The notes below the pieces were generated by a model that was given only the letters and a program-made list of their open reading frames with translations, searched no databases and was not told the DNA's origin. Both the position numbers and the translations under genes were made by a program. Shown piece by piece: positions 4,701 through 41,900 of a stretch of 64,000 nt of DNA; within the stretch, counting starts at the first letter, position 1, and every line of letters starts with the position of its first letter. The stretch is from Klebsormidium nitens (lineage: Eukaryota > Plantae > Klebsormidiophyceae), in NCBI GenBank assembly GCA_000708835.1, contig DF237172.1:1-64000 (forward strand), given 5' to 3'.

Positions 4701-7201
4701 GTCGTCAACGCCTGGGACGACGAGGCCTTCACGGCCGCGGTGCGCGCCACCGGCAAGCGCAACCTCGTCATGGCCGGCGCGACCACTGACGTGTGCCTCG
4801 TGCCGCCCGCCACGTCAGCAGTGCTCGAGGGCTTCAACGTGCAGGCGAGTCGCGTTCCTGCGCTCTCAAGAAAGATGATATAAGCTCCGACCAACACTAG
4901 AAATCTAACCCAAAAAGACCCCTGCTCCGACCCAGACCCACCCTAATCAACAAACTAATTCTACCCGTCCCAGTGCGGTCACCTTATCGTTATTTCGGCT
5001 TGTTATTGTCTTTCTTGAGCTCAATTCGCGTTCCTGCGTTCTTGAGACCTTGAACGAATTAAGCGGGGTCGAGGAGAATTAGTAATTTGGGGACCGGGGC
5101 CGGGGATGCAGTTGGAAGGGCTGACGTGGCGGCTTTAGGGGCGAAACCCTAGGCGAGGCTCGTTTCGAACAGTCGGATATCGAGTAGCCCCCGTTCAAAA
5201 CCCTGACCCCCGCCACGTCACCTCTTCCAACAGCGTGCTGCAATTACAGATTCTTCTTGAATGCGCTCTGATTGACGAGAGAATGGATCAGGAAAGCAGG
5301 GACGTCGAACAATCTTCGATGCCGTCGTGCCGCCCGCCACGTCAGCAGTCCTCGAGGGCTTCAACGTGCAGACGAGCGTCGATCTGATGAGTCGGACAGC
5401 TGAAGTGGTGACTAACACGAACAGAATTGGGATCAGGTGCTTTCTGTAGCTACGAAATTGGCACCCTGAGCTTCCACTGGTGCTTCGAGTCATGCTTTCA
5501 GACCGTCAAAAGAAGTCAATGCTGGCAGTTAAAAGCGCGCACGGAAATCTGCAGTCCTCAAACCGATGAACCGACTTTACACCAGTCTCGTCACGACCAT
5601 AACGCCATTCGATCAGAACGGCACTCTAAACGAGCATCTATCACCCGAAAAGAGACTTCGCGGCCCGACTGACCCACGAGCGCAGTCATGACGCTTGCTT
5701 TTGGCGTCTCGCTTTTTCGGACAAATCCCCGACTTTCTCGCCCGGCCTGGTTCGCACTTCTTCAATGAGATGCTTCATCATTCCATCGTTAACGCCAGTT
5801 CCGACGTAGATACTGGAGCATGAGGGCGGGATCATTGGAACGGTTGCTAGATTTTCACCACGGAATCACGCAAGGAAGTAACCTGCCTCTTTAACACAGG
5901 GTTTGTTGGACGCTTAATGGTAGTTGGTATGAGCTGGTCGGAAGCTGGTGACGTCATCAGTGAGCAGACTCGAGCAGAACTAACATGGTCACAGCCGGGT
6001 TATTGGTCGTTGAAGCGAACTCAAGTCTGGTTCCGCAGCGTGGTTAGTAGCCAAACCCTTCCTTGTTACACGTTGCAGGCCGTCTTGGATGCGTCCGGCT
6101 CCCAGACCGTCATGGAGGACCAAACGGCGTGGAAGCGCATGGAGAAAGCGAACGTCAGGTGGGCACCTCTGCCAAAAGCGTCCAAAGAATTAACTCTCGG
6201 TTATCATTCTTAGAGTGGAAGTGAGGCCCGTGAAGAAAAGGATAATTAAAACCGGGGAGAGAGAAAGTAGAACCCTGACCTAAATGCCCACACGCTTCGC
6301 AAACCTATTCCACCTCAAACTACTCCCTGTCTCCCGGGCATGGCGTTATTATCTAGACGGCCTTTGAGGCATACATCGAGAGATTTCCATTAAAAACCCA
6401 ACCATGTATCCATTACTGTTTGGATACAAGTGACTCTGACGCATTTCGTCGGACCGTTTGATGAAAGAGGTCGCCTATTGAAGCGTTCAAACGAAGATTA
6501 GAGAACGAAAGAATATTGGTCGAAGGAGGACCCGGAACTACGATCAGTAACTAGGAGTGACTCGCAACACGAGGATCATCATCCAAGTCTCAGCTTTGTC
6601 GAAGCAAGACTTTTTCTTGGCTCGCTATTCTCACGAGCTTCTTCACTTAACCCTTTTATACACGAGGATTCGGATCACCCGACCTACACCGATTCCACTG
6701 CCCACTGAAAGCGTGCTCTGGGGACAGTTTGACAAACGCATCGCACAATACTGTTCCCAAAGCGTCTTTCTACTGGGGGTTTCTCGTTTAGCCTTTGGGC
6801 ATCTTCTGCTTGGAAGCTGGAAGGCATGAGAGCATCCTTCGACCATCTTAGCGAGACGGGACCGACCCGGCTTTGTGTTTTGGAGTATGAAAGCAGGGTT
6901 CGACAATCAATCACGGAATCTCCAAACGCAAAGACGTGGAACGGGTTGGCCCAGTGATTGTGGGCTAGGTAAAGACATTTCCTATCAAAGAAGCCAAGGA
7001 AAGAAAAGGGAAAAATAGTTTCAACCGTTCCATATTCAAGTAATTGGGTGGGAATACTAGCGGCCCTGGTGTCCGATCAGTACTGACCATTCGCACGTCC
7101 GCAGGCTGACCACCACCAATGCCATCGTGTCCGAGCTGGTCTACAATTGGGCCACCCCGGCGGGCCAGGCTGGCTTTGGCCTCCTCGCCCCTGGATCGTA
7201 A
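1722..7201 (+). CDS. ycaC: YcaC-like isochorismatase/cysteine-hydrolase family protein (multi-exon; 5' end incomplete)
   Basis: In-phase exons 1722-1777, 3363-3495, 4633-4844, 6079-6158, 7105-7201 (TAA). They translate to ...RFKLEDTAMVLIDHQVGTCSWINSIDQKTLLKNTVILAKFAAATGMPTVLTSSMETNVQG...KRVGVVNAWDDEAF...MAGATTDVCL...AVLDASGS...LTTTNAIVSELVYNWATPAG. The LIDHQ, R..VNAWD and TDVC motifs match the YcaC Asp-Arg-Cys triad. Possible upstream exons: <1-48 and 1332-1342. Confidence 0.92.
3183..3333 (+). repeat. dispersed 'GCTAACCAG' repeat family, copy 1
   Basis: Shares ordered motifs (gctgctaaccag...gaccaataac...ccatgtta...ctgctcgagtct...cttcgaaccagcccgtgacc) with the copies at 3691-3872, 5915-6052 and 45228-45378. 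Confidence 0.65.
3691..3872 (-). repeat. 'GCTAACCAG' repeat family, copy 2 (inverted relative to copy 1)
   Basis: Reverse complement reads ttgctaaccaggcttgctaaccag...gacccaataacc...aaccagacttcgg...gactctggtta. Confidence 0.6.
4865..5019 (-). mobile_element. G-run-core fold-back element, arm type c
   Basis: Ends CTCAAGAAAGA...TCTTTCTTGAG. Core 4896-4969 (reverse complement gacgggtagaattag...attagggtgggtctgggtcggagcagggg...ttgggttag) aligns by eye along its length with 40832-41007. Confidence 0.75.
5108..5234. repeat. small fold-back with 25-bp imperfect inverted arms
   Basis: 5108-5132 gcagttggaagggctgacgtggcgg versus the reverse complement of 5210-5234, gctgttggaagaggtgacgtggcgg (3 mismatches). 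Confidence 0.75.
5325..5371 (+). repeat. intronic copy of the last 47 nt of the preceding ycaC exon
   Basis: 46/47 identical to 4798-4844. Followed by acgagc instead of the gcgagt donor. Confidence 0.95.
5915..6052 (-). repeat. 'GCTAACCAG' repeat family, copy 3
   Basis: Reverse complement reads ggctactaacca...gaccaataac...ccatgtta...ctgctcgagtct...ccagcttccgaccagctc. Confidence 0.65.
6266..6338 (-). mobile_element. degenerate core of the G-run fold-back family
   Basis: Reverse complement cccgggagacagggagtag...taggtttgcgaagcgtgtgggcatttaggtcagggttcta resembles the core of 17264-17456, including the cccggg flank. Confidence 0.45.
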
Positions 7202-8037: not shown

Positions 8038-11000
8038 CTAAGCCCCAGCCAAACGCAGCTTCTCGTAGGCTTGATCTTTTGGACCCGACAGAGACTGATG
8101 CAGATAGCTTTGTTGGATGCGCCGCCGCCTTTCCCGTTTTGCTTGCACCCAAGCCGGCACCTGAAACGGCAAATAAAAAGTTGTGAGCATCCTGTTGCAT
8201 TGATGAAAGGGAAGGGTTCGAATATGGCCGTTAAACATGCACCATGATTGGGGCTACAAACGACTACCAGATTTGCGGCTGACAACTGATCCCTCGGATG
8301 CTCAAAGTACCGAGTCAGAAGGCATCGCATGTCATGGCTACTCGTTCCCGTCAAGACAAAGGAAAAGACTTGCTCTTCTTATTGCGGTCTAGCAGTCAAA
8401 GAGGCTCCATATGTTAGCAAGGCAAGATCTGCGCTACAGTACGTGCTCCCGGGCAGAATCAATGAAGAAATGCGCAATACTTGCAAAGATCGAGCCTTGC
8501 TTACAATCAGATGGCTGAACAAGAGCTCGAGTCTGTCGACAGTTACAATCCAATCGACTGCTTTTAATCATATCCGCAAGAAAAGTCTCATACAAGATCT
8601 GCGAGTCAAATTCTTGAACGTGGACCGAAAGAGGCGTAGAAATCTTAGCGCCAGCAGCAAGTCGGTGACCGACTTTCAAGCAGTAAAGGACACTTTATAG
8701 AGCTTTGACGCCAGCCGACTGAGCTGAAAGACTGCACTGGCCGAGCGCGGCTGAAGGGGAATGACGCAAGCGTGGCTGACTGACGGGGGAAAGCACCAGG
8801 GTGGATATACTAGTGAGCATACAGCATCCGCAAGCCGGCCAAGTGAGCAGAAGCATGTGCCAGCGGCGCACGTTCGAAAAGAGAAAGAGGCAGAATCGAC
8901 AGATTGACCGGGGGAAGGAACCAGGCGACGACTCACTAGTGAGCACATAACATTCGCAAGCCGCAGAAAGATGTGCCAAGGGAGCACGGCCAAACAGATA
9001 TGACAGACTGACCGGAGGAATGAACCAGGCGAGGGAGTTGCGTGCGAGCAGCAGCAAATGCTCCACGATGAGCAGGACAAGCAGGCCCGGGTCGATCCGC
9101 CACGTCTTCTGTTCGTCGTAGATGACGACGAGGAGCAAACAGTTGCTGACGATCGCAATGACGCCCAAGTACTACGGGGAGCAAACCAGTGCAGCGGGTT
9201 AAGCGCTTCAGGAGCCCGGGTAGGCGCACCGTATTTGTGAAAAAAAACCCGTTTATTTGAGTGACTTTTGGCAGAACTGCTGCGGATTGTGGACAGCATA
9301 TTTTCTCAAATTGCCCGTGCATATTAAAGCATGGACCTGTGGGCCGTCGACAATCGCATCCAGGCGAGTTCAGATTTCGACATTCCCAATCATCAATGCC
9401 CGCACCTGGAAGAAGTTGAAAGTAGATACGCCTTCAATGGGCCTCTTACCAAACACCGAGAAGGATATTCTATAAGATCTACTAGGTTCTGAGAAGAGGC
9501 TTTCCTATCAAAGAAGCTCTTGTGTTCGATAAGCAAACCTCTGGACGAAGTACCTGGAAGATATTGAGCCACGCGCCGATCGACGCGACCCGGTGCGGCA
9601 CCGGCCGCCGCATGGTGCACGCCAGCTTGAACGAGTCGCTTCGGATCTCCGCCAGATTGTTGACCAGCGCAAAGAGCGCAACGAGCGGGAACGCCCCCGC
9701 AAACATGGTAACGACGCCGAACTGGAGCGCGAGTTCCAGAAAATCGTCGAAAGTGCCGTCGTATGCGCCGCCGCCGATGCTCGCCACGTAAGCCGGCATG
9801 TGGGACTCCCGCTCGACGCGGGACGCGGACGAGCGGCTGGCCTTCTCTTTGGTCTCTCTTTTCTCGGCTTGCTCCTCCCTGCAGAGGGAAAAGCGAAGAA
9901 GTCGGTGGAAGGTTTTTAAGGGGAAGTAGTGAGGTGGAAGGGAAAGGGGAGCGAGGACTTGCGGGAGGGTTTGGGATAAAGATTTCGATGGATAAAACAT
10001 GCGTCCGCTGCAAGACCATCTCGATGTTTCAATTCGTGCAGAAGGAGGTGGATGGAATCTAGGTATGGTGGTGGCTTTTCGAAATGGAGCGTTTTCCCGG
10101 CATTCATTGTAATTTCAGTCAGATTAAAATCGATAACAAATAGTTGATCCTTTCTGCTCTGTTAAAACAATGTGCTTTTGGACCGGATGTACAAATTGAT
10201 TACTGTTGACACCAGCTCGCTCTTGGAAGGTCGTGAATTTCCAATCACGCCGTCAATCAACGTCCAGAACGCGCCTCTCGACGCGACGATTGCTACCCAT
10301 CCTTTTCCAGACCATGTCGAATTATTTTGACCGTAACTAAGCAGAAAAAACACAAAGATCTCGGACTTCATTCGCGAGCTCCATTTCTCGAGCTCCATCC
10401 ATGGTGCAAAGCTGCTGGACCAGTCCTTGCCACCGGCTAAGCAACGAGATTTTCAGAGCAGCGACTCACTGTCGGGCCTTCCGCTCGCTCATGTAGAAGG
10501 TAAAGATCGGCACGCCCACCTCCGTGATGTTCTGGATGATCTGCAAAGTCGCAACAAGACTTGCCTGATCAATTCTCGATCTTTTGGGAAACAAGTCTCG
10601 CCAAGTCGAGCTTCCGTAGACGAGCAAACGCTACAAGCTTCTGACAATTTTACACGCATGCCCACCCAGAATCCTAAGTGGATTTTGACCTACAGTGTCT
10701 TTCCATCAACCCATAACTTGGAATCGTTGGTGCTTGGCCCGCCAGGATCAAGACAGACGAACCGTTTGCCAATTAAGTGAGTCTTGTCTATGAAGTCGCC
10801 CGCTTCCATTGCGTTGGGTTCGCTGTTCAGTTCTTCATCCTAAGATCTGCTTGCACGCAATTTAGCGAAGTTTCAAATTCTGCCATACATGCTGCAAAAC
10901 ACATGCGCACGCCTCCCGATGCTTGTTGACTTGCTTGCCCCCAACGGGTTGAAGAGGGCCGCATCGTCGTTCTTTATCCAAGGCGCCCTCGAGCGGAGAG

Positions 11001-14000: not shown

Positions 14001-16927
14001 GGATCATAGGTCAGAACAGGTGCCGTAGTGCAATAGTATTCAGGCTTATAGTCACGTAATTGGCAACTGTCTTAAAGAAAAAAGTCCATTTGTAAACGGG
14101 ACTGTTCCAGAGGGTCTTGTAAGCTCCTGAATCTTAAGCTTTGGCCTTAACAGATTCAGCACATTTATAAGATAAGCTAGGAAAAGGCAGTCTTAGGGTA
14201 CTCTGTTTCTAATAATTGTTGAGTTTCTAGGTCGTCCAAGACCTAAGCTCATCAGAAGTCAATTCCTGTATCATCCACGAACGAGTCTGGGACGTTTTCG
14301 GCGTTTTATAAGGCGGAGTCAGATCCATGAACAATTCCCGAGGATGACCTGAATGTTGGTTGAGGCGCGCGTTTCTTTTTGCGGATGTGAGCTTGGAAGT
14401 TGACAAAAGTAACGACAAAGGCCAGAAAGCCAGAAAGGGTGGTACCCAAAAAGCCAGAAAGGGTTGTACCGGAATGGGAAATTTGGCTGCACATTCTTAT
14501 AGTGAACCCACCGTATGCTTTACTTGTTCAAAATCATTCCTTGCCATGAAGATTGTGATCTGAACCGTCCAAAGCCCTCTTAGGAACCCACACAGACGGA
14601 CCAAAGCTGAACATCGCTTGAATTCAGATGGTCATGAAGCCAGCAGCAAAGAAGTGCATTGTGTTTCACGATGCGCTTCTTTGCTGCTGGCTTCATGATG
14701 CGCTTCTTTGCTGCTGGCTTCATGATGCGCTTCTTTGCTGCTGGCTTCATGATGCGCTTCTTTGCTGCTGGCTTCATGACCATCTGATTCGGATGTCTTG
14801 CGGGCTGGTGCATACCTTGAGACCGAAGTAGGAGTAGATATCGTCCAGCGGCTGCTTGGTGCCTCCCAAGAAGTTGAACGGCCAGTGGCGGACAAGCTCC
14901 TGCCGTTGAGACTCGTCTGCAGAAGGCACACCGGGAGTCGATTCGGAATAAACAGCTAAGTACAAACATTTTCCAGGCTTTGTTGCAGAGCCAGAGGCCC
15001 AAGCCTTGGCAGGCCCTTCACTGTTATACTCTACGACGTGAGGCCTTTTTGGATTCCACAGTTTCCTAGGACCATATTCGGGTAACCCTTGAAATCTCAG
15101 CCTGCCTGCAATGGCCCTTGAGGGCACGTGAACAAAAGTCCCAGACTCGTGTGCGTCAGCTCAACCACTTTGAAGGAGGACCCAAGAATACGAGGAAGCT
15201 CACTGTGCAGAGGGAAGATGTCCGTCACTGCCCCCTTCTCGCGCAGCGCCGCGACAGCTTTGGTGCCCCGGGTGATCTCGAGATGGCCCTTTCCGCCTGG
15301 GAGCGCCAGCACGGTGGGGCTACTGGTCTTGGCCTCCTAGAAAATGAGAAGTTCGTTGGTCCAGGACGAGTAGAATCCGATCGAGCGAAAAAGCAGGCAT
15401 TGCCTTGTAGGAAACCCAAATGCTTGATTGTTGAGTGTTTCGAGAATGCAGATGGTGTGATCGCCTGCTAGATGAGCAATTCGGCCTTTTGATGCACGGG
15501 CGCTACACTAGCATTGTATTGCAGACGCAAAAGCTTCTAAGTTTAAGTCCCCTTCCTGATTGCATTATCCCACAATGGATATTCCGCAGAGAAGTGCTTG
15601 CCAATACGCCTGAAATTGAGAGCCAATTGCAGACCCGGTGCCCGCTTCCAACTCCTTTGGCCTCTTGGGCTATTATACTGAAAACGAAGGCAGACTCACA
15701 ATGCTTTCAATGATGGACTCGAGGCACTGGTAACGCTCCGTCCGGCTGAAAAGAGCTCCATCAGGCTGAGGGACGAAAGAGTCTCGCAGATCCCAACTGA
15801 AATGTGTGTCAATTCCTGAAAAACAGACACGGGACCGAGTTGGTGGGGCAATGAACAGAGTGGGCAGAAACAGGGATGATGTAAGAAGAACGCCCTATTG
15901 CATTACGGGGGTCTACTGCCACGGCGCCAGAAAAGTGGGCACGTGAACGCATACTCAAAAGACAACTGGCTTCTTGGAGGGGGAGATTGTGGCAGAATCC
16001 GTATCAGCATTCGTCTTTGACATTGCTACTGCTTGAAGCCCGTAGGTCCTTCTACAAAAGAGAAGCTTCAGAGAGCCAGACAAAAGACACATGGGCGTGA
16101 AATGCGCCCAGTTCTCAAGCCCTGTAGCCTTGATAGCAAGTCTATCTCCTTCCTGCTTGCTTCAACAATCAGAGATTGGACTCACCCAAATTTGTCAACT
16201 TCGTCAACTTTAGTCGCTCCGCCTCTCTTCCAATCACCTCCAGCGGGGCACCCACCTGCAACAAGTGGGCTTTCACATAGTACTCTGCCAATTCGAGAAG
16301 CTCTATGTGGGACACCCTAAAACTGTGAAGATGATCCCCACAGTGCATCTTTCGCCAGGATCATTCTGGGCCCGGACTTCAGAGATCCACCGCAATTGCT
16401 CAATGTGACCCGGAAAATGCCAACCACTATATGTTTGCAGCATGCAGCTGTTGCTGAGAATGTTATCGGGACTATTTGCCATTTGGTGTTTCAATGTTGT
16501 GGTGGACAAGCGCAAATAAGGAAGTTACTGTCACAGACTATCACCAGCACCGCAGCACGCAGAGCCTTTGCTACAGAGCACGACGGCATTTCAAAGTGGA
16601 AACCAGGTTTACTTACAAGTAAGTATGCCAACGATTGCTTCTTTGATGTCTGAAAACACCCAACACGCCACATGCATGCAGCTGTGACTAGTAGCAGCAC
16701 CTCACTTTGAGAAACTGCTCCGCATTCCTCCCCATCACTCGGTCCACCTTCAACCCGGCAGCCTCCAGGCCCTGCACCAGAGCATCAATGGCATCCTCTG
16801 CTCCTACTCTCCTCATTTCATAATTGTTCCCATTCTGCCGGTCCGCAGCACACACTATTGCAATCTCTGGCTCGACAGCTTCATGAGCAAAGGGCTTCTC
16901 CCCAAACCTGGCGAGTCCTGTCGCCAT
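8038..16927 (-). CDS. TMEM16: anoctamin/TMEM16-family protein (plant At1g73020 type), 14 exons, 673 aa
   Basis: Exons 16927-16706, 16255-16186, 15815-15700, 15336-15204, 14916-14816, 13862-13771, 13317-13213, 12797-12599, 11956-11765, 11232-11119, 10540-10470, 9878-9554, 9171-9013, 8160-8038. All GT-AG and in phase (2022 nt). Motifs: QPLDDIYSYFGLKVAMYFAFLG, FWKRYN, FDDFLELALQFG...NNLAEIRSDSFKL...RRP...IGAWLNIFQ, VEHLLL. Confidence 0.95.
8785..8928 (-). repeat. two decayed tandem echoes of anoctamin exon-13 tail plus donor plus intron start
   Basis: 8909-8928 matches exon tail 9013-9032 at 18/20, with donor gtcaatctgtc versus gtcagtctgtc. A weaker third unit has its donor at 8784. Donor-to-donor spacing is 104 and 124 bp. 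Confidence 0.85.
11602..11698 (-). pseudogene. decayed duplicate of the 3' half of anoctamin exon 9 with its gtgagg donor
   Basis: Reads GQVT-KLGSSIALR-QTFVS-TEQEADALVYK|gtgagg versus the live GQITKLGSSVAMRLNKTQTFVSKEQEADALVYK|gtgagg. Carries two +1 insertions and a 10-nt deletion. Confidence 0.9.
12029..12106 (+). pseudogene. rps12: organelle-derived (probably mitochondrial) rps12 5' fragment, NUMT
   Basis: ATG at 12029 gives MPTINQLIRENQKPKDQSSRTRALHQ, the RPS12 N-terminus (MPT.NQLIR...RTRAL). A/T-rich codons and an AT-rich leader. Breaks off before the conserved CPQ. Lies in anoctamin intron 8. Confidence 0.75.
14624..14790. repeat. fold-back hairpin whose right arm holds four tandem 27-bp units
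   Basis: Left arm 14624-14663, loop ttt. Units ca(c/t)gatgcgcttctttgctgctggctt at 14667, 14694, 14721 and 14748. The tail catgaccatctga is complementary to the start of the left arm. Confidence 0.93.
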
Positions 16928-17263
16928 GACGTTCCTCAAAAACGCTGCAAAACGCTTTTGGTGCAGAGGCTTGATTCAGCACAACAAAAGGGCAACTTTT
17001 CCTCCTTACAAAGAAGCAACCCTAGTTTCTGACGACTGAGCTCGCGAGGCAACAGGCAACCCAGTGCCCAGCTTTGATCGGCAACTTCCACTTCAAGCCT
17101 GCTCAACAGGGCAAGCATGCACAGTGTAGAAAGCGAATCCGCTCCTGCCACCTGGCACGATCTGGACAGATTGACGAAAGTAGGGGCATCGACTTGATCC
17201 AACGGTGTTATGCTAAGTTGAGAACTTGAGTCTAGAGTATGCAGCCGAGGCAGACGATCCACT

Positions 17264-30949: not shown

Positions 30950-33218
30950 GATCTGGACGAAGATCTCGCTGACGTCATGGTGGAGGACCTGTCAAGCCTG
31001 GATCTCCCTGACGGGTGGAGAAACTACCTGCGAGAGAGCCGTGCGGAAACGGAAATGACAGACGTGAGGGAATAGAGAGGCGCAGTGTTTCAGAAAATCC
31101 ATGGAGATTCCACAATCAAATGCTCGGCTTCTTCTCTCTTCCTTTTCGGATTGCTTCGCGTCTCTGTAATTTCGTTTGTAATATTATTTTTGTGGCTACG
31201 CCCTTTCGCTGCCCCCGCGGCCTGTCTCTTTGCTTTAACGGAAACCGTGACACCACTCCCAAACGCCTTCGATTCCTGGTACACTCAAGCAGATGCCGAT
31301 TGAGATTCTGACATTGTCAGCTTGTGGGACTGATACTCGACGCGGCACCGTGTGCAGATTGATTTGACGAAGTCTCTGGGCTTTTCGATTTTGGAACCTG
31401 CATCCATCTGCACTTCTGCCGAGTCCTTTGGTATTTCTCGATCTAGTGAACAGCAAGCCCAGTGAACAGTAAGCACTTTGGGGTTTACTAAAACCCTAAC
31501 CCAAAATATTACCCGCTCCGCACCCGTTCCCACCCTAACAACCTAACTAACCCTACCCGTCTCCATTACTGTTCACCGGCTGTTACTATTCACTACATCG
31601 ATCGGGATGTCCTGTGGGCATCCACCTTCTTCTGCTGATGCATGATGCATGATCCTGATGAAGCTCCACCTGTTCCGGCGTTAAGACAAGCAAGGTTTCC
31701 TGTCTTTCAAGGATCCGGGAGTCGAACTTTTCACTTGTCACACTTTTATACTTGTCACACTCTTTACACTTGTCGCATTGTCACCATCAGTGAGCGCTCA
31801 GATCTATAAGCAGCGGATGCTTTCTAGCCGAAAACGTTAAGCAGCCCACATATTACCTGAAGCCTGTTGAAGATAACGGAGGAAACTCAATCCGCCTCCG
31901 TGCCCTCTAGTTGGAAGACCCCAGTGACCGCAGTTTTGCTCCCCCCTCCGCAGACCGCGCCGGCCGCAGGGGCGCCCGCGGCGCGGCGCGTGCCCGCGCG
32001 CGCGCGCGGTTGGCCCGCGTCGGCTGTTTTCGACGTGGGCGGCTCTTCCGCAGATGACCGAATTACGTGCCCGGACTGCGGCAAGGGGTTCGCGAGCCGA
32101 CACTCTCTGGCCAACCACAAGCGCGTGCACGATTCTTGGCTGGCCAAGGTGAGGTCTGGTTCCGGTGCGGTTCCGTTCCGTTCCGTTCTGATGGATGCGG
32201 CGAGAACATTGGGGTTACCAAGGATCCTGCAAAAAGTCCTCGGGAAAGATCAATCAAGGAATGGTAGAGGGGGCCCTTGCAAGAATACCAGGGCGGCATT
32301 TGAATCGTACAGTTTTTCTTTTCTTTTCTGAGTCGGATAATTGGTTGAAAGCTAGATTCTAGGGAGAACTTCTCAACGAAGGCGATGCCGGAATACAAGA
32401 TTCGAACCTCACTCTGCACCTTTGTTGATCTCCTGAGTTTATTGCTTCAGAAGTTATTGATCCCGCCTTGTCCTCAGGACAAATCCTTTCCCAATCCTCT
32501 TTCGCAAGAGATCATACCAAACCTTAGGGTAACGAAGTTGTTGGCGCTCAGAGATGTACCTTTTCACGAGCGCCCTTTCAGAACTGAGCAGACGTGAGGG
32601 TTCATCTCGCTCAAAAGGAAGTGGCGGGACGATGCATTGAAAATTCACCAGGCCCGAACGGCTTTCCTGCTTCGTATAGCCAAACCGATGGCAGAACTCC
32701 CATGTGCCCGCTGTTTCGTTTGGGAACAGTATGCTCGGGATTGCCGCTCCGCTTCGTCTCTTCTTTTTAAGCTGAGGTACTTGCATTCTATCATGCACGC
32801 CATTCCGCATCTTATTTCCCGTCAATTCAGTCTATGACAACCGGGGAAGAAATTCTGGTTTCGGCTTTCTCAAGCGGGAATTCAAGCACGACCTGAAAGT
32901 GGATGACTCAGGAGCTTTTCAGGCTAGTGGGCGTTCGACCAGTCCTTACTCTCCGTATGTTGCACCTCTCAGGACGTCGGTAGCAGCTCAAGGGGCCAGA
33001 AGAGCGGAGCGTCCGCCGTCGATGTGGATTCGGACGACGATCGGACGGTCCGGCGTGTCCTGGAGAAGAAAGCCAAGTTTGGCTCCAGCCGGGGCGACCC
33101 AGCGAGAGAAAAAGCGTCCCCGAAAAATGACGTGGCTGCCGACGTGGCGCAAGCTCTGAAGGCGATGCTAGCAAAAGAAATCAAAGCGGGCGCGCGGCTC
33201 CTTACAGAGGAGGTTTAA
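30950..33218 (+). CDS. C2H2 zinc-finger protein (5' exons unresolved)
   Basis: Phase-0 exons 30950-31063 (DLDEDLADVMVEDL...), 31954-32148 (CPDCGKGFASRHSLANHKRVH) and 32973-33218 (TAA), with canonical AG/GT boundaries. Confidence 0.7.
31438..31601 (-). mobile_element. G-run-core fold-back element, arm type b
   Basis: Imperfect TIRs tcgatctagtgaacagcaagcccagtgaacagtaa and, as reverse complement, tcgatgtagtgaatagtaacagccggtgaacagtaa. Core 31487-31561 is the reverse complement of the family core. Confidence 0.82.
31729..31783 (+). repeat. short tandem repeat, about 18-bp period, 3 units
   Basis: acttgtcacac-containing units. Confidence 0.6.
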
Positions 33219-34253
33219 ACTAAGGAGCGTTAGAAAGCGAGCAGGTTGTCAAGGAGCGAGCTACATTGTCAGAACGTGATGTCCAATACAAAGTTACACG
33301 CGAAGGGATTAGGGAGTAAAAAATCAGCTTATGGCGCTGTCGACTACAGGCAAGGCGATAAGGCTGTAACAGATGGGAGGTATGAAACGGCATGATATGA
33401 ACATCTAAGATTGGGCATCAAGACTCGACGTGCGGTCTGTCGATTCTGCTCCACAAACAAACAAATCTACCAGTAGAAGATGAAAAAAACATAGATAAAA
33501 CGCCTTACAGCGTTTCCCACTTTCTCAAAAAGCAGATGTCCACGTGGTTCATCTCAAGAAGCAATTCAATTCATATAAGGTGACGGCCTTGCCCGATGGC
33601 ATGCAGAAAGGCAGACCAGCTCTGTATAGAGTGTCAACTCCAACGTACGACTGCGTTCGATCAGACACATGTGAATAATCCATCATGTTGCAAGCTGCAA
33701 TTGCGCAAGGGAGAGATAGTTGCAGGCCTCCCATATTTACAGACTCCTTGTAATGATTACGAAGGCATGTCTTGCACGTGTCAAGTCACGATTGGACGGT
33801 TGCCTTGAATGTTGTTTCCTTTTAGAACATGCGACCGCATTCGTTGGACCGTCACGCCGTCCAGACAGCTAAGAGTAATATTCCTTGACCCATCCGATTA
33901 CAGATTAGGGTCGTTTGGATTTGAAAATGAAAGCCTTCCTGGGTTCTTGGAAAATGGTACTATAATCTTTTGGAAACCAAGACTTCCGTTGATCCTCTTC
34001 GTCTCTTTCAGTGACGTCCGCCAATCAGGTACAGTTCTGCTACGACTCGTCATACTCGATACATTATTGAGCTTTACCCACATTCCTAAACGGTCTTATA
34101 ACTTTGTACGGACCTGAGTACTGGTTGGCAAACAGACTCAAACGTCACTGATATTCCTTTTCTATCATGCGCACCGCTGCCTTCAGTTGCTTCTCCATCT
34201 TTCCCGCGGTACGCGCTCGCCAAGAATCTGACTGGCGCATCCTTGGAATCATC

Positions 34254-34466
34254 TTATTGGCCCTCCGCTCTTCCGCAGGATTCCGGTCCGTTTTTCGCTC
34301 TTCCGCCGGAAGCTGATCCGTTCTCCTGGCGATCTGCTGGCGGGTCTTGGTCCGCCTCCTCATCGTTCGCCTCTTGGCGGCTGGAAACGTCCGTGTTCGT
34401 TTTCGGATCGCTTTCTGCTTTTCCGCTGTCGGAGTCATCTGACGGAACTACGGACGTGCGAACCTC
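34254..34466 (-). other. possible terminal coding exon of an unresolved gene (70 aa, acidic/low complexity)
   Basis: taacag|EVRTSVVPSDDSDSGKAESDPK...GRAEGQ*. A further coding-looking segment lies at about 35660-35757 (IVRTLFINAANDPNAWQ). No homology recognised. Confidence 0.3.
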
Positions 34467-35997
34467 CTGTTACGGGAACGAACGAAGGTTGTGAAACTTC
34501 AAGTTCTCTATGAATGCTGACTATTTGGTCACATTTAAAAATGCGACGTCGAAGTCTGATCAGCCAGTATTGAAAATCCACAAAGTCACAAGCCTTCTAC
34601 TGATCTGGCGAGATAACACTGAGCTCTTTGAAGATTGCCACAAATTGAGTCTCTGAATTCCGTGCCTTTGGGCAACAGCATGGCGCCGCAACAGCATAGG
34701 CCAGGTGATTTAGACGCGCCATCCGCGTGCCCGATGTACACCGCTTCATAGCCGCCGAAAAATCCAAATGGGGATGGACAGTCGATGCGAGCATTGACAG
34801 AACGTGCTCTTCATGCAAGCAGAGACCTTGTTCAGTCTTTTTCTTTGAGGAAGCAACAGAAAAGACACAAATCTGTTGACGTAGCCACCATCAGGTGGGT
34901 CCCTGAGCTATCGGACTAGAGGCTTTGACTTACGCGGAGTCCTTGGACTGCGTCCTAGTAGAACGTCTTTGCACGTCTTGCGGCAAATCGAGCCGACCCC
35001 CCCGCAGGCCCGCCCTTCGGGCTCGTTGCTAAATTTTCTGTCTCTATCGACATGAGTCTAACGTGGCGGACGTGCACTGCAGCACCGGGTGACTCTAATC
35101 TCAATTGTTTATAGGAAGCGTGACATGACAACAGCTTGGGACTTGAAGCAATGGCGTGGTATAAGTTCTGGAACTTAAGTGAGGCCAGGGCCTTGCCACA
35201 GCGAGGGACTACTTAGTGCATTGAAAAGCACTGGCCTTTCGATCATCGAACTCGTAAGTAACAGCCACTTGACGTACAATGCAACGTCGAAGTTTTGCAT
35301 GGTGACGAGCACGTTATATTTCCAAGTTGCAGCATACTAGATCACCTTGGTGTGCATGCACATCATCACGCGGTTGGCTGCTGCACACAATGTCGGTTTA
35401 CTGAACTTAGCCACGTACGTACTGTGGTATATATGGCAATGTTTAGAGCGAGGTATCAAATAAGTCGTTGCATGCATGCCGTACACTATAACAAGCTAGA
35501 CTCACTGGACATACTAAGCCGTCGGTCATGTGGCAGTTCAGCTAAAATGTACTTGCTTTGCCTGACTCAACGTTGTTAGCAAATGATGACCAAGAGCTTC
35601 GCAGATCGTACATGTTATCTCCCAAAACCACCAAACCAAGCCTCTTTGATTGCAGCTTGCTTCTCGCACATGTCACGATGACGTTCATGTCCTTCGCGTT
35701 TGATTGCCAGGCGTTGGGATCATTGGCGGCGTTGATGAACAGCGTTCGCACGATCTGGTAGTGCATAACAGCGATAACAGCGCAGTTGCGCTTCAAGTAT
35801 CATTGATTTCAATGCCAACAGTGTTTTTGGCGCGCTTGCATTGCAAAGCCTCGCTCTGTACGTAATGCATGACCTCACCCTCAAATATTTTTCTAAGGGA
35901 CTTTTAGCTAGTATCTACATTATGACTCTGGTCCACTGGCGGCTCTAACGCAGTCTATTAATCTAGATTGAAAGTTGCCCAAGCTTCATGCTCGAGC

Positions 35998-38900
35998 TCA
36001 GAAGAACAATCTAAAGACACTTTCGATCTTAGTGTTGCAGAACGGACATTCCCCTCTCTTTTCCTTGATCAAGGTGCCACAATCGTAGCACAAGCAGTGA
36101 CCGCACGGTATGATCGCCCCGCTCTTGGGGTTGTCGAAGCAGATACAACAACTGTCGCTCTCTTGACCGTCCTGCTTATCGGCTCCGCTACGAGCTTTCG
36201 TTTTCCTCCGTCCTACTGTTTTACCGGATGCGATCGGACTCTCTGTCCGAATCGCCGCCGAGTTGCTCCAAGAATCGGGCCCACTCTCGGTGGTTCCAGA
36301 CCAATCAGAGTTTGCCACGTGGCTTGATCCGGTAGAGTCTGGTGCAGGGGTCGGGCGGTCCCTCTCTGGTTTATATACATTGGAGGCCGCAGCGAATCCC
36401 GGAGGAGCTGCGGTTTTACTAGCACTTTCTACCGGTAGAAGCATCGCCAGTATCGACGGAAGCTCAGGGGAGAGCAAACCGGGCTCAGGCGACCGCTGTG
36501 CGCCTGAACCGATGACGTCCCACAAGCCCCCAGTCATTAGGCGGAGCATGTCTCCATTTACATCAGCGGACACCTCCGCTGACGTCGTAGCCTTCACTCT
36601 GACTGTTGCCGGCTCAGAGCTTTTGGCAGCCGGCTGACCGACTGAAGGAGTCCTGCGTTTTGAGGGGGTGATTGGAACGCCGGTCGGCTTGGGAGAGGCA
36701 GACTGCCCGGTAGGAATCGCAGACTGACCGGTAGGAACGGCAGACTGCCCGGTAGGAGCACCAAACTGCCCAGGAAGAACGGCAGACTGCCCGGTAGGAG
36801 CGGCCGGGGCAAGGGACCTCCCTTGAGCCAGGGGATTGTACGCCAGGGGCTTGCGGGGCGGTTCACTGGTAGCCAGAGGACCCCGAGGGTTACTGTCAGA
36901 TATCGGGTTAGGATTAGGGTTAGGGTTCGCTTGCAGTCGCCCAGACCCCTGGGACAGCGGGTTAGCTGTTGCTCGGGGGCTGGGAAGGATTCCGTCGCCC
37001 GAAGCATTCAAACCCGGAGTATTCACACCCGGCAGCATCACCACAGGAGGAGCAACCGACGGCTTTCCCTCTCGGTTGCTTTTCCTCTTGGCCGTTTCGC
37101 TGCGCGTCTTCTGAGTCTTGGGCGATCCAGCTTTCGCGCGTTGGGACCCGCGGGAGGGGGGGGTGAGGGGCGGAGTTGGAAGCAGGGGCCCAAAGTCGTC
37201 ATGGGTGACGTCAGCACCGGCCGTCGCTCCCCGGGACGCCGCCGGGGGCCCTACGACCGGTAGAATCGGCCGGTAGGGTTTTGGCGCAGCCTGCTGGGTG
37301 TGTTGGCGCCCACTTGCCGCGTTCGGAGACTCTGCAGAAAAGCAAGAGCGGGTGGACGGTTTGAGTTCAATCATGTTTCGCCAGAGAGAACATTTGGTCC
37401 TTACAACCGGTCCTCAAAGTTGCACTCTGACAAACATTCCAAGTGCAACGTTCGCAGTAGAGTAGTTTGAGGACGATTGGCAGATTACCTGATCTATTGT
37501 TTACGTAGTATAGGGGCCGGTAATGGCCCAGCCCTTTTAACATGCGGCTCGGTTTTCTCTTGCACAACACTCTTTGAATGCGAGTCAACTGTAGTAAGCA
37601 CACCACCGAACTGCCGCTCTTCATTCCGCCCTTCATTCTACCTGCTCCACAAACTTCTCACTCAGCGCACGGAACAAGCTAAGACAATCGCTGTTCCGTC
37701 ACCTGATTGTGAAACCGGGTACGGGGAAGAAAGGTAAATAACCGAGACCCAAGACCACAATCCTGATATGATAACGCCGTTCGCCCAAGCTCGGCTGCTT
37801 CAAATACTTCCTGGAAGGTGGTAGAGCTGCAAGTGTCCGCCAAAGAGATCTCGGGCTGCGTGACAACAACATCAGAAATCTGAAAGAACTTCCCAACGGT
37901 CTCAAGGATAAGACCGCCCCATCCTGTCGAACACGACCTGCATTCAGATCTTCGGCACAAAGTTGGCGAATCGGAACGCAGGGTCGACCGAGAAGATCTG
38001 GTTGTTGGGCTTTCCCAATTTGGCTTTGCAAAAACAAGTAACCTTGAGGTGAAAGCCAAAATGAAAAACACAAGAACCGAATCAAAGATGGGATTACCTA
38101 TCGCAGGCACTGAAGCAGCCGTCCGGCTCCGCGACGCCTGTCCGCCAAGCGTTCCGCCTCCGCTACTGGCCGTCGGCCTCTCACCGGCTGCCACATGGCT
38201 CTCCGGACCCGTCCGGACGTCCGACCGGCCTCCGGCGTCCGGCTGGCGGCAGCCGGGCGTTAGGGTTTTGGGCTCGCCCGGCGCAATTGCCGCGAACGCT
38301 CCGGTAGTTGGAGAACGAGGCGAGGTCGAGCCGGGGACATTGACGGAATTCGAAGAGAGTGTGGAGACGACACCCGAAGCGACATCCATCGAAGCAGGAG
38401 CAGCGTCCCCTCGAACCTGCAGAAGGTGCATTGGTTGAACTTTCGAGCTTCGCTTAGCCGGGTTAGCTGATCTGCTTGGACGGCTACGGGCTCTTGTATG
38501 GTGACCTGTCGCTTTGGAGAGCTCTCGACTCTGAGTTTTACAAAGTCGGAGTATTCCAATGTGTCTCCGAACGGCAAAACTTTCAATTCAAACACCGTCG
38601 AGTGGTGAGTAGGGCCCCCAAACTCATCTTTCATCTGTAAAGGAAAGCCACGCTTATCGCCATCCAGCGGGTAAGGTCAAGAAGGAGACCCAGAACTAGT
38701 TTCCGTTTAGTTCTCTAAGGAGGTGAGGCGCAGGTTGTTCTCCGCACCGAGTCGTCCCAATCCAACGTATTCCTTGCGGGAACAAGTGCCACGTGTCGTG
38801 TCCCTAAACCCATTACCATACCAGCGTTTGAGTCGTCAAATAATTATTATTTTTATGGCCTGACGAATTCGCTGGAATACTTCTGGGCGTAACGCTAGGG

Positions 38901-41900
38901 CTGCCGAAACCCGTGAACGTATTATAGTCAATTATCTGGCGTCGAACCTGACGAAATCAAACGCTGGTACGGTATGAAGCCCACCGCAAAAGCTTCACAA
39001 GAAGGAAAATACATATCCAGCTCTCAATTCGACCCACCTCATGCTGACCGCTGATGACGTCAACGGCCTCCGCTGCTCCTCCGCCGACGCTGATGCGCTC
39101 CGGTGGGGCCCGACTGCTGGCGCTTTCTGCGCCCGGCCCAAAGAGTCCCTTCCACCTCCGTCCATTCCGTTGGACCACTCCCCCTCCGGACTTGTCGACT
39201 CCCCCTCCGGATCGGCTGGACGATTCTGACTTCCAGTCAGTCATCTGGTCGCCCGAGTTAACACCCGGTTCATCACCGGGTTGACTACCGGGTTTATCAC
39301 CAGGTTCGGCATAACCGGCTTCTCTTGTTGGAGTTGAACCGGCGCCGTTGTCGGGGGAGGTTGACGTCTCCGGGATAAGCTGATGAGGCGAGCCGACGTC
39401 ATCTCCGCTCGCGTCGACTTTCCCAGCTGCTCCGCTGCTGGCCGGGGCAGGGAGCCCTTCCGCGTTGTCCGTAGACTGACCCTTCTTTTTCTTCTTCTTC
39501 CCTTTCTTGGTGCCCTTTGCGTCAGGTGCAGACTCGGCACTCAACTGCGAATTGAAACAGAAAGGTTTCGAACCGGTGGAAGAAAGAGTCGGAACAGGGT
39601 ATAAGCACGGGAATCGATGCTCAGTAACCTTCCGTGCACGAGAGGCACCCTGCGTTTGTGAAAGACTAGTCCAATTGCAACACAATACTTTTACATTGAT
39701 CTTACTCCACAAGCATTCGCGACTGCGTCCAACAAGTGCCTGATGCTGCAGGTTCTGAAGAAGCTGGACAAAGGGAGTACATCGCACTTTGGTCAAGCAG
39801 CGCTTGTTTGGAACCAAACAAAGGGGAAAAGGAGCGGGAAAAGGAGTGCAAAAGGATCAGAGGACAAAAGGATCACGCAATACTAGGGCACTCGGATAGC
39901 GTTTGTAAACATACCAGTTCTTTCACCCGCAGCATCGAACAAGGTTGTCGAAAGAGTACTCTGTTCCTCATTTCAAAGCCCCTTGTCTCTGCGGCTTGTC
40001 ACTCCTCGACGACCAGTATCAAAAGCAGTCTGCCCCGAGGACTTCTAGCAGAACTCCTTCCGGTGACGTCCCTGGTTGCCCGTGCTTACCAGTTCCGCTG
40101 CCGCTGCTTCCGCTGCCTCCTTGATCTGCCGCGGTATTCCGTCCGGCTCGTCCCGTGCGCCGTGAAGCATGATCCAAAGGTCTTTGGCCAGAGCAATCGC
40201 GGTCTCCTTATCCCCCAAGGCGGATCTCAGAGCCAGATGCAGCTCGGTAGGCCCCCAGTCCCTCTGCAAAATAGAGATATGAAAGTGGGCGTCGGAAACA
40301 TCAAGCACACTTGTGAGACTGAGTCCTGAGGGACGCTAGAGGGAGGCTCGGACAGGCCAACTCTGAGCCGTCCGGTAAATCAACTCGGTGGTAAAAGCAC
40401 CGTTCGATGTCCAGGTGCACTCGCAAGCGCAGACGCCCACTTCGAAGATTGGCTTGGGAGTGCCCAAAGATTACAGGGCTGCATACTACATATTCAACTT
40501 GTAGTATATTGAACTTCGCTGCTATCTAATCACAAAGCGTCCTGCTATAATATGCGGCTCCTAGGGCAAGTCTTGCAAGAGACCCGATGGATTTGACATG
40601 GCTAAGGCTGAAGTTACTGGTGTTGCGTTTCCCATGGTCGGCAGAGAATCCTGTTGATACTGATTGCTTCAAAGAGATCGACCGGTGGTACAAGTGAGGC
40701 CCCCGCGTTTTCCCTTCGGATTTCGGATGACCTTAGCAGGAGTGCATGGCACAAGTATGCGGATGACGCAGGCAGCAAATAGGAAGCTAGGCATAACGGA
40801 CGAAGCGTCCTGAGACCAACAGAGAATGAAACTCAAGAAAAATAATAGTAAGCCCATATAATAGTAAGGTAACCGCACTGTGACGGGTAGGGTTAGTATG
40901 GTGGTTAGGGTGGGTACGGGTGCGGAGCGGGTGTTTCTTTTAAGGTTAGGGTTTTAAGTGTTAGTCGGAGCTTACTATTATCTTGGCTTACTGTTATCTT
41001 TCTTGAGAGTTATCAACAGAGAGAAGCGCAGGCACGATATCAACCACGAGACCACTATGAAACACGTCACCAGGCATTAAAAAAGTGGACACTCGACACA
41101 AGCGATTCATCAAAACCGTGCAAGCAGGGCACTTGGATAACTGCATGTCAGCACCCGAAGCGAACCATGCCCGTTCCAAACCCAATCGAAGCTCCGACCA
41201 GCTTGTCGCCAAAAACCTCATCTTATCAGGCTTGCTCTTCCAAAATAGCAGGTCATGGGCTCACCACGTCTAATGGTTAAGTCAGCGCTGGTGTTCAGGT
41301 TGGTTCTAATTTTGTTCAAACGATATCTCTTTATTTATCACTTTATGTTCAATCTTGCTATATTTCGGGTTAGAGGTTATAACCCAGAAACTGGGCTTGG
41401 TTTCCCGTGCGGCAAAGCAATCGCTCACCTCATCCCAGAGAATCGCCTCAACGCGCCTGACGGCGCCGCTGCTGAGCCCGGCCTCGGGGAACCTCCTCCT
41501 CACCCAAGTCATGATGACGGGGACGTTCACGGATGACGTCAGCTGCCCCCACTTAGGCCCCACGAACGACGCTGCGACTTCGGGGTCTACCCCAGCAAGG
41601 ATGTCTTTTCCGAGCGCGCACGAGACCTGATCCACCACGTTCCCCACAAACTGTTTCACAAAGTCCCGCTGCTGCAGCGCGGCTACTGAGTCGGCCGGCT
41701 TGCTTTCCGCTCGGTCATCCGAGCTCGTCGTTCCGTCGTTCTGTCGTTCCGTCCCGTCGTTCTGAGCCGCCCGTTGCGCACCCTTGTCAGCGAGCAGAGT
41801 CCCCGCGTCCGCTGACGTCACTGGGGTGTGCGGGGCGCTTTTCACCCGGGCACCCGAGTCCTTTGCGCGACTCCCGACGGTCTGAGCTGGCCCTCGCGCA

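Follow-up and report, generated by a model that had tools for sequence, protein, structure and literature searches.

The fold-back elements scattered through the window, by which we mean the whole 64,000-nucleotide stretch of the Klebsormidium nitens genome analysed here, are best explained as foldback-type MITEs: non-autonomous DNA transposons of the cut-and-paste kind, forming one very abundant family with copies on the order of a thousand; we put the probability of this reading at roughly 0.6. Because the 9-letter footprint of cut-and-paste transposons is present, the element is an unusual variant of a known transposon type and not a new type of element. A full copy consists, in order, of a 9-bp target-site duplication (TSD), about 6 non-inverted terminal nucleotides, an arm of 36-41 bp, a core of 55-85 bp that is asymmetric and G-rich, the inverted counterpart of the arm, another stretch of about 6 terminal nucleotides and the second TSD. 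The visible elements measure 155-193 bp, or 167-210 bp when the termini are included and the TSDs are not.

Five copies were listed in the initial annotation. Four of them are clear (4865-5019, 17264-17456, 31438-31601 and 40832-41007, here copies 1, 3, 4 and 5), but the fifth (6266-6338, copy 2) is only a decayed relic. That these form one fold-back family with a common G-rich core and differing arms was borne out for the four clear copies, where pairwise BLAST of the cores and alignment agree. All four sit in non-coding DNA and fold into long hairpins, the pairing of which does not need the core. No ORF longer than 52 amino acids was found inside the two copies checked (copies 3 and 5), and no arm-only or core-less copies were found in the window. 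An assembly gap at 27143-27462 falls between the copy ending at 17456, 9.7 kb away, and the copy starting at 31438, 4 kb away; since no copy touches this gap, its continuity is irrelevant to the finding.

The flanks of the elements had been reported to have no consistent TSD. On the contrary, a 9-bp direct repeat borders 4/4 good copies: TCGCGTTCC matches at 9/9 positions around copy 1, GGCAGACGA/TGCAGACGA at 8/9 around copy 3, GTCCTTTGG/GTCCTGTGG at 8/9 around copy 4 and CAACAGAGA at 9/9 around copy 5, with an empirical P of 1e-4 to 1.4e-3 for each of these four copies with readable flanks, all from one window. Relative to the visible inverted repeat, the left TSD occupies a fixed offset of −15 to −7, and the right TSD follows at a variable distance of 2-7 nt. 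The roughly 6 terminal nucleotides in between are not conserved between copies. A 15-bp TSD was rejected, as it fits copies 1 and 3 and not copies 4 and 5. An origin of the 6 terminal nucleotides in a previous TSD was also discarded, the expected overlap of left and right sides being absent on inspection by hand.

Copy 5 (plus strand) has its left TSD, CAACAGAGA, at 40817-40825, matching 41014-41022 at 9/9 positions with mismatches bounding the repeat on both sides. Between this TSD and the inverted repeat lie 6 non-inverted terminal nucleotides (40826-40831), giving a sub-terminal layout. The 5' arm (40832-40868) consists of a CTCAAGAAA block and two tandem 16-bp units with ATAATAGTAAG (period 16, 12/16). 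The core (40871-40958), which by nhmmer and BLAST is the nearest to the family consensus, has 0 mismatches to the core 28-mer, a PQS and a G4Hunter score of 1.56. The 3' arm (40971-41007; period 16, 14/16) completes an inverted repeat of 37 nt at 89% identity, and is followed by 6 terminal nucleotides (41008-41013) and the right TSD, again CAACAGAGA (41014-41022). Copy 3, on the same strand, is bounded by GGCAGACGA at 17249-17257 and TGCAGACGA at 17459-17467 (8/9; in a local alignment with one gap, 12 of 13 columns match, P 0.002). Its 5' arm (17264-17304) is a CTGGCAACTC block plus two 16-bp units with GCTTTCACTAAG (period 16, 13/16), and forms with the 3' arm (17416-17456) an inverted repeat of 41 nt at 100% identity. 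The core was placed at 17306-17396 by contig depth and has a G4Hunter score of 2.36; homology across the family is sharpest at 17316-17368, and loose ends of contigs begin at 17311/17316 and 17364-17368. Paralogous contigs match copy 3 from 17261 to 17459/60.

The remaining copies lie on the minus strand. Copy 4, located by nhmmer and alignment, has arms at 31438-31474 and 31563-31601, each a TCGATCTAGTG block with two units bearing AGTGAACAG, and a core at 31483-31565 whose G-rich strand is the minus strand; its TSDs are GTCCTTTGG (31423-31431) and GTCCTGTGG (31609-31617), which agree at 8/9 positions. Copy 1 (4865-5019; nhmmer, alignment) has arms of the copy-5 type and is older, and its window-left arm has lost one 16-bp unit. 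Its core, at 4896-4980, likewise has the G-rich strand on the minus strand, and the TSD TCGCGTTCC is found at 4850-4858 and 5026-5034 (9/9); the repeat in fact extends to 13 nt, a 13/13 local match with 5026-5038 (P 5e-5). Copy 2 (6226-6371; nhmmer E 0.008, 12 bits, and partly by eye) retains a core at about 6259-6344 within degenerate arms spanning about 6226-6371, and by eye an inner CCCGGG segment resembles copy 3.

Each arm is built from a terminal block of about 9 nt and two tandem 16-bp units. The doubled 16-bp motif claimed for each arm type was recovered in 5/6 arms of copies 3, 4 and 5 (12-14 of 16 positions; 14/16 in one copy-4 arm), but the other copy-4 arm fits best at 17 bp (11/17) and none is detectable in the decayed element at 4865. 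When the two arms of one element are compared, z is 10.9-23.4 in copies 3, 4 and 5 but falls to 2.5 in copy 1, which is decayed. The three arm types described previously are real, with element ends reading CTCAAG..CTTGAG, CTGGCA..TGCCAG and TCGATC..ATCGA, and loose ends of contigs indicate that the genome holds further types. The arms of copies 1 and 5 are 67-75% identical, with 72% identity in the core, and copy 4 arms are significantly like copy 5 arms (z up to 6.6). The 17264-type arms are only 40-47% identical to other arms, no different from shuffles. A fourth arm type, seen as the consensus of loose ends at 17299, has the CTCAAG end as in copy 5 (z 4.4 against copy 1) joined to an inner segment that from 17300 onward is as in copy 3. 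As judged from these comparisons, the arms of the sub-families appear to be related (4865 and 40832, 31438, and the fourth type), mosaic, or diverged past recognition (17264). We read this pattern as modular evolution in one lineage, in which arms are replaced or re-shaped and the loop between them is inherited. Recombination between copies, or template switching between them, might change the arms, as might the tracking of different transposase specificities.

The core is common to all of these arm types, with 72-81% identity between them over 76 nt. A core 28-mer with up to 3 mismatches gave 3 matches against 0 expected, and pairwise BLAST among the four cores gave E values of 1e-6 to 1e-15. 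The GGG runs and TTAGGG words noted earlier are present in every copy, and the motif GGGTGGGNNNGGGT(G)CGGAGCRGGG occurs in 4/4 copies. By motif, the core is predicted to be G-quadruplex-capable: loops of 1, 3 and 7-8 nt are found in 4/4 copies, and G4Hunter scores are 1.56-2.36 in 4/4 copies, compared with 0.4% of window positions scoring at least 1.5. A telomere-derived repeat was considered and rejected, as the telomere unit of Klebsormidium is TTTTAGGG (PMC3622300) and not TTAGGG, and the longest match, TTAGGGTTTTAG (12 nt), occurs only in copies 4 and 5. Searches with the core pattern gave 0 matches in prokaryotic genomes, 0 in IMG/VR and 2 in metagenomes (L001 and L002). The first of these is a chance match; the second, an environmental contig, carries a true core-like stretch of about 58 nt, with 26 nt identical, and no recognisable arms. 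A Logan contig of another organism, which bears the only two relatives found for the window's RING ORF, contained one unrelated foldback and no core.

Conservation of the interior with drift of the ends had been described as the reverse of ordinary MITEs. This holds only between sub-families, where the core is 72-81% identical and copy-3 arms are at chance, but inside the main arm type (copies 1 and 5) decay has been similar in arms (67-75%) and core (72%). In the old copies 1 and 2 the core has decayed too. Both this even decay inside a single arm type and the decayed state of copy 2 argue against host-level constraint on individual cores, of which there is no sign.

Copy number was estimated from the contigs of one DNA run, of which 560 match. 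The summed depth over the core was 17,432-34,516, against a baseline of about 20 (870-1,700x), and in the bin 17313-17413 the summed contig depth reached 12,268, compared with about 20 in the flanks of copy 3. The parts specific to copy 3 had a summed depth of 273-488, equivalent to about 14-25 copies. The core is thus present in roughly 900-1,700 genome copies, a rough figure from summed contig depths and not a direct copy count. Genome-wide, the core is 50-100 times commoner than the 17264-type arms, and the copy-3 type accounts for about 1-2% of the copies with a core, as seen in contigs. Since the core has about 900-1,700 copies and the 17264-type parts have about 14-25, a conserved core with variable arms is a feature of the family across the genome. 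The 53-nt centre of the core is found in hundreds of distinct contigs. A single contig of the copy-3 type, at single-copy depth, has no core and joins 17324 to 17393; it is the only such contig.

The elements have the features of MITEs, being small and non-coding, with inverted repeats, a fixed-length TSD and a high, dispersed copy number. They also share with Mutator/Foldback elements the 9-bp TSD and composite arms of tandem repeats with short non-inverted termini; Mutator/Foldback (MULE) elements have TSDs of 8-10 bp, mostly 9 bp (PMC3169594). The family was therefore most likely moved by MULE transposases, an assignment to superfamily made from TSD length and architecture because no autonomous element with these ends was found. 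No transposase ORF was seen among the ten ORFs scanned of the window's 16 of at least 200 amino acids. A second MITE in the window (55902-56198), unrelated to the foldback family, also has a 9-bp TSD, and a 9-bp-cutting transposase has therefore worked in this genome. In the mechanism we propose, a DDE transposase provided in trans, and most likely of the Mutator-like MULE/Foldback group, would bind the four 16-bp units, pair the ends, excise the element and insert it with a 9-bp staggered cut. The core may be neutral cargo or may aid transposition, for example via its G-quadruplex-capable run.

Other superfamilies were compared with this assignment. Merlin-type elements have TSDs of 8-9 bp, and the superfamily may be Merlin-type rather than MULE. 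The initial annotation had proposed Helentron-associated HINE/DINE-1 elements and Cryptons as comparators, neither of which fits the 9-bp TSDs and long inverted arms. Helitrons and Helentrons make no TSD, insert between A and T or T and T, and have a 5' TC end, a 3' CTRR end and a 3' hairpin; the 9-bp TSDs and the three pairs of element ends given above exclude them here. Cryptons lack terminal inverted repeats (TIRs) and a staggered-cut TSD and use tyrosine-recombinase sites, so a non-autonomous Crypton was rejected on the long inverted arms and 9-bp TSDs. KDZ transposons were rejected on the 9-bp TSD, by criteria that come from fungal families only, in which the TSD is 7 bp (Kyakuja) or 8 bp (Zisupton, Dileera) (PMC12730594).

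Among the closest known systems are Tm1 of root-knot nematodes and other Mutator/Foldback-type elements whose inverted repeats are sub-terminal, which share the 9-bp TSD with the present family (PMC3169594). Tm1 also has composite inverted arms made from tandem repeats, of 13-15 bp where those here are 16 bp, a short non-inverted sequence between the TSD and the inverted repeat, and MITE-like non-coding members (PMC3169594). However, Tm1 has conserved asymmetric 7-bp end motifs (A1/A2) and variable repeat numbers, whereas here the roughly 6 terminal nucleotides vary and most arms have exactly two units. The present family further differs from Tm1 in having sub-families with a common loop and different arms, and in being without a known transposase-bearing member. 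The foldbacks of plants and Drosophila (FB, FARE, SoFT, Hairpin), known from PMC3169594 and from general background, resemble the family in the large share taken up by the arms, the tandem sub-repeats of the arms and the central loop, and FARE carries a transposase with a MULE domain. Unlike the family here, they are usually larger with long variable arms, and the literature consulted describes no conserved G-rich loop that their arm types have in common.

Our literature searches returned nothing pertinent on MITEs with a conserved centre and different TIRs, nothing on G4-bearing MITEs, and no paper on Klebsormidium MITEs. A parallel exists among retroelements. CORE-SINEs, V-SINEs and Deu-SINEs, which are retrotransposed RNA-polymerase-III elements, have a central domain conserved across families with different functional ends. 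A conserved centre with differing ends is thus common to both, but the family described here has inverted repeats and fixed-length TSDs, and it is therefore a DNA transposon.

Provided that the census holds, the family, with about a thousand copies near genes, probably outnumbers every other DNA transposon in this model streptophyte alga. The sub-families would form a natural experiment in which the ends of a MITE change while the interior stays, and they bear on two questions, namely how a MITE passes from one transposase to another and whether its internal sequences can matter for transposition. Repeat annotation should model core and arms separately, because a single consensus would mis-assemble the family.

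There is also a possible tie to the intron-forming 9-bp-TSD MITEs of this genome. A published screen, as we read it, listed no introners for the species. Introners of Micromonas, Aureococcus and other algae are, like the present family, short non-autonomous DNA transposons with TIRs and TSDs, a very high copy number and an algal host (PMC9860276, PMC12130899). The family might itself be an intron-generating ('introner-like') MITE of which the copies here are non-genic members, which would add to the foldback-MITE explanation and not replace it; we regard this as possible, with the balance somewhat against it. In its favour, the main arm type, on either strand, has GTAAG twice near the 5' end and terminates in AG preceded by a pyrimidine run (CTTTCTTGAG). 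However, the four copies all lie in non-coding DNA, and, on inspection of both strands by hand, none of them could be spliced out precisely as a GT..AG intron that uses the TSD. If splicing started at the internal GTAAG, 37 or 53 extra nucleotides would stay behind and be out of frame. RNA contigs contain no joint across copy 3. These four copies, unlike the algal introners, are not introns: no GT..AG pair fits them and the RNA lacks a joint over copy 3. In the species table of PMC9860276, the K. nitens row reads 1 0 0 0 and the Aureococcus row 1 1 1 0; by comparison of the two, and going by the entries alone, the K. nitens row was read as 'aquatic, no introners found'.

The cross-sub-family conservation of the core could reflect function, the core being a selected cis-acting module that sub-families with differing arms kept or re-acquired since it made transposition likelier. 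Candidate roles are those of an internal enhancer, a bend or loop that helps the ends to pair, or a G-quadruplex by which replication is stalled or a host factor recruited, and the family would then be the MITE counterpart of CORE-SINEs. The identity of the core across arm types where copy-3 arms are at chance level, the intact G-quadruplex motif in 4/4 copies, the centre shared by hundreds of contigs, the single copy-3-type contig without a core and the core-like stretch in the unrelated environmental contig without these arms are all consistent with selection. However, recent common descent with arm replacement yields an identical picture without function, and the old copies lose the core as quickly as the arms. 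Moreover, core-less relatives would have gone unseen, because copies were found via the core. Selection on the core is doubtful in our view. A stronger form, in which the G-rich core would be a portable cis module kept or captured by several transposon lineages with unrelated transposase-binding arms, as it promotes their spread, would make this the first 'core-domain' MITE superfamily, and the family might also be the source of transposon-made introns in this genome; we consider this form unlikely.

Alternatively, the arm types would be unrelated MITEs, each of which acquired part of the same very abundant element, either through nested insertion or through a template switch in gap repair, in which case the common core would say nothing of a common design. 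The copy-3 arms lack significant similarity to other arms, the rarity of the copy-3 type among core-bearing copies is as for an occasional chimera of a thousand-copy donor, and the distance from arm to core differs by type, being 4 vs 13 nt at the 5' arm and 12-24 nt at the 3' arm. Nevertheless, all types have one architecture, in arm length, terminal block with two 16-bp units, 9-bp TSD and offset of about 6 nt, and no footprint or TSD is found beside the core inside the elements. The fourth type, joining a copy-5 terminus to a copy-3 inner segment, points to a network of relatives, and independent capture seems improbable to us.

That the elements are hairpin-RNA or structured non-coding RNA genes and not transposons is very improbable: the long perfect stems and the core-bearing contigs in RNA-type runs (about 60 per run, in runs only guessed to be RNA) would suit such genes, but RNA contigs are expected for MITEs in UTRs and introns, the TSDs and dispersed copies in unrelated contexts speak for transposition, and Rfam gave no match at gathering thresholds across the whole window and only noise (E 5.8 and 9.5) in a permissive search on copy 5. 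A second MITE in the window (55902-56198), unrelated to the foldback family, also has a 9-bp TSD, and a 9-bp-cutting transposase has therefore worked in this genome.

All five named sites were read and aligned in a single orientation, and a G-rich core beginning GACGGGTAGGG and ending GGTTAGGGTTTTAG was common to four of them: copy 1 (4865–5019, minus strand), copy 3 (17264–17456, plus), copy 4 (31438–31601, minus) and copy 5 (40832–41007, plus). With up to three mismatches allowed, a 28-nt word from the centre of the core had three matches in the window against none in 100 shuffles, and pairwise BLAST between cores gave E values of 1e-6 to 1e-15. The remaining site, copy 2 (6266–6338), matched a profile built from the other four weakly (E 0.008) and has degenerate arms (about 6226–6371), indicating an old, decayed copy. 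Several copies with one G-rich core, as described in the initial annotation, are thus confirmed, four clearly and the fifth in decay. The assembly gap at 27143–27462 is kilobases from every copy and leaves this finding unaffected. The asymmetric core does not self-pair, and the motif GGGTGGGNNNGGGT(G)CGGAGCRGGG is found in 4/4 good copies. G4Hunter maxima were 1.56–2.36 in the four copies, a value of 1.5 being reached by 0.4% of the 25-nt windows in the window; by computation, a G-quadruplex motif is present in the core, as a candidate quadruplex only.

Each good copy folds as a single long hairpin, with arms of 41 nt and 100% complementarity in copy 3 and of 37 nt and 89% complementarity in copy 5. 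Each arm was then scanned for its best internal tandem period. This was 16 bp (12–14/16 matches) in both arms of copies 3 and 5 and in one arm of copy 4, but 17 bp in the remaining arm of copy 4, and the scan gave no clear repeat in the arms of the decayed copy 1. These exceptions apart, the scan agrees with the doubled motif of 16-bp spacing noticed earlier, and resolves an arm into about 9 nt of terminal block and then two 16-bp units in tandem.

Target-site duplications (TSDs) were sought in two ways. In the first test, 25 nt from each side were locally aligned and compared with 20,000 random pseudo-elements from the window. Copies 1, 3, 4 and 5 scored 13 (P = 5e-5), 10 (P = 0.002), 7 (P = 0.07) and 9 (P = 0.007), respectively, and the left repeat started 14–15 nt ahead of the arm in all four. 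In the second test, the left 9-mer was fixed at −15 to −7 and the right start left free, 0–10 nt past the arm; matches in the same order were 9/9, 8/9, 8/9 and 9/9, with empirical P values of 1e-4, 1.4e-3, 1.4e-3 and 1e-4. Such matches at a fixed left offset identify a 9-bp TSD as the footprint of the element, contrary to the earlier reading that no consistent TSD exists. The duplications had been missed since they are set off from the inverted arms by about 6 nt per end (6+6 in two copies, 6+7 in one, 6+2–3 in one). These terminal nucleotides are part of the element, without inverted repetition. For the arm type of copy 3 (the 17264 type) they are backed by paralogous contigs, whose similarity extends to 17261 and 17459/17460, a few nucleotides past the perfect arms. 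The repeat of copy 1 is longer (13 nt), which may be chance or a local target feature.

Copy number was estimated by placing contigs from four runs, one of DNA and three presumed to be RNA, on 16000–19000 at 80% likeness. From the DNA run 560 contigs were placed, almost all at the core. Depths are rough only, since the runs are kept as Logan contigs and depth is the sum of contig means, but against a baseline of about 20 over unique flanks the summed depth was 17,432 at 17334 (~870-fold), 34,516 at 17340 (~1,700-fold) and 23,463 at 17358 (~1,170-fold). At 17384–17399, specific to the 17264 arm type, it was 273–488 (~14–24-fold), and the bin with the right arm of copy 3 had a mean depth of 163, about 17 copies by our own arithmetic; about 1–2% of copies are of the 17264 type, making it a minor sub-family. 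Loose contig ends start at 17311/17316 on the left and 17364–17368 on the right, which limits family-wide homology to the central 53 nt and a second block, TTTTGGGTTAGGGTTTTTAG, that recurs in the loose-end consensus past a spacer of variable length. The left consensuses are heterogeneous (agreement ~0.5). The largest group is like the main, 40832-type arm of copies 5 and 1 (..TAAGGTAACCGAACT), a second group (36 contigs) is unlike it, and a third (7 contigs, agreement 0.72) reads AACTCAAGTGTGACCTAACAGCCGTGTGAC and is a fourth arm type, its motif again doubled at 16 bp. Contig depth and loose ends therefore extend the annotated pattern of one core with several arm types genome-wide. One genome variant of the 17264 type lacks 68 nt of core (joint 17324 to 17393), and two others have the core partly duplicated, with joints going back 48 and 71 nt (17311–17381, contigs of sequencing run X1).

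The arm types were compared with one another against shuffles. Arms of copies 5 and 4 were significantly alike (z up to 6.6), and the fourth type resembled copy 4 (z 4.5) and copy 1 (z 4.4), with a CTCAAG end common to it and copy 1. The 17264 arms matched no other arm type (z 1 or less). However, the fourth type enters homology with copy 3 as early as 17300, and so has the inner segment TAAGACAGGCACCC of copy 3 plus the main-type CTCAAG terminus. Given this mixed arm and the common architecture and TSD layout, the arm types look like a mosaic network in one lineage, not unrelated elements. Identity over the 76-nt core and over the arms was 74–81% and 40–47% for copy 3 versus the rest, 80% and 60–66% for copy 5 versus copy 4, and 72% and 67–75% for copy 5 versus copy 1, which share an arm type. 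The proposed reversal of conservation relative to ordinary MITEs thus holds between sub-families but not within one; old individual copies lose the core at the same pace as everything else.

The small size, lack of an ORF, inverted ends, fixed-length TSD, high copy number and non-coding sites beside genes define a MITE. The family is a real and very abundant one of foldback type, its structure, footprint and abundance being established, and its unusual trait is modular evolution, with diverse arms around one G-rich core. A Mutator affinity is probable. Tm1 (Mutator/Foldback) likewise has a 9-bp TSD, tandem repeats in composite arms and short non-inverted termini, a layout that its authors also report for other Mutator-like elements with 'sub-TIRs' (PMC3169594), whereas the KDZ families described have TSDs of 7 or 8 bp (PMC12730594). 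A second, unrelated MITE of 297 bp (55902–56198; 55893–56207 with TSD) has 58-nt arms of 79% complementarity, no G-rich core, and a 9-bp TSD (TCTGATATT / TCTGATACT) directly at the TIR, and transposases with a 9-bp stagger have therefore been active here. No transposase was found among the 10 scanned of the window's 16 ORFs of at least 200 aa, nor was an autonomous partner among the window ORFs scanned.

In the mechanism we propose, a MULE-type transposase made elsewhere would bind the four 16-bp units and pair the element ends, and the element would be cut and pasted with a 9-bp stagger. Recombination or template switching between copies could give rise to new arm types, as could selection for a fit to another transposase; the loop containing the core would be carried along. 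The core itself might help transposition: it is kept across arm types with its G-run motif intact, but against such a role the copies were ascertained via the core, and in old copies it decays equally. Helitron/Helentron derivatives and Cryptons have no such 9-bp TSD and Cryptons have no TIRs, so that the comparators first suggested, Helentron-associated HINE/DINE-1-like and non-autonomous Crypton elements, are both ruled out by the TSD and the latter also by the inverted arms.

No Rfam family matches the core, and searches of 185,579 prokaryotic genomes and of IMG/VR gave no match. An environmental contig, L002, has a true core-like stretch (26 identical nt, followed at the expected distance by the GGTTCAGGTTTTGA block) with no recognisable arms. 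TTTTAGGG is the telomere unit of Klebsormidium (PMC3622300). The longest piece of this array in the core is 12 nt, present in copies 4 and 5 only, so 'telomere-like' describes a weak resemblance. The C-rich strand of copies 4 and 5 carries AAACCCTAA, which we take to be the plant telo-box word.

On both strands, two GTAAG words stand close to the 5' end of the main arm type, whose 3' end is CTTTCTTGAG. As introns the copies were rejected: 0/4 could be removed as a GT..AG intron via the TSD, RNA-type contigs showed no joint across copy 3, and 4/4 good copies lie outside coding sequence. In one species table the K. nitens row is 1 0 0 0, which, judged against the known introner hosts there, we take to mean that no introners were found (PMC9860276). 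Copy 3 is flanked on both sides by contigs from the runs guessed to be RNA (16185–17645). In the left stretch, a CT..AC joint links 16252 with 16703 and corresponds to a minus-strand GT..AG intron; this stretch ends 13 nt inside the left arm (17276); the right stretch starts at 17604–17645, and RNA depth is almost nil over 17460–17604. Copy 3 may occupy a divergent promoter or start site.

Near copy 1, CCGCCACGTCA / TGACGTGGCGG occurs three times (4813–4823, 5108–5132, 5210–5234), two of the sites forming a 25-nt inverted pair (5108–5234); the ACGT-core words there look like bZIP-type promoter boxes. A foldback at 14624–14787, with no clear TSD seen, sets one 27–28-nt unit (TCATGAAGCCAGCAGCAAAGAAGTGCAT) opposite four tandem inverted copies, and FB-type elements likewise have unequal repeat numbers between arms. 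Two large paralogous gene regions (17604–27097 and 35998–49983) have a DUF627 match near the start (17830–19050), C-terminal RING fingers (26075–27097 and 35998–37374) and short internal duplications (..EPDGIP..IKEAAEAAA..; 40045–40308 and 41306–42322), and 18043–18528 has 1–3 more paralogues in DNA and RNA contigs. A 167-bp foldback without the G-rich core (10574–10740; 30-nt arms, 90%; interior unrelated) lies in L003, a Logan contig of another organism that encodes RING proteins 49–64% identical.
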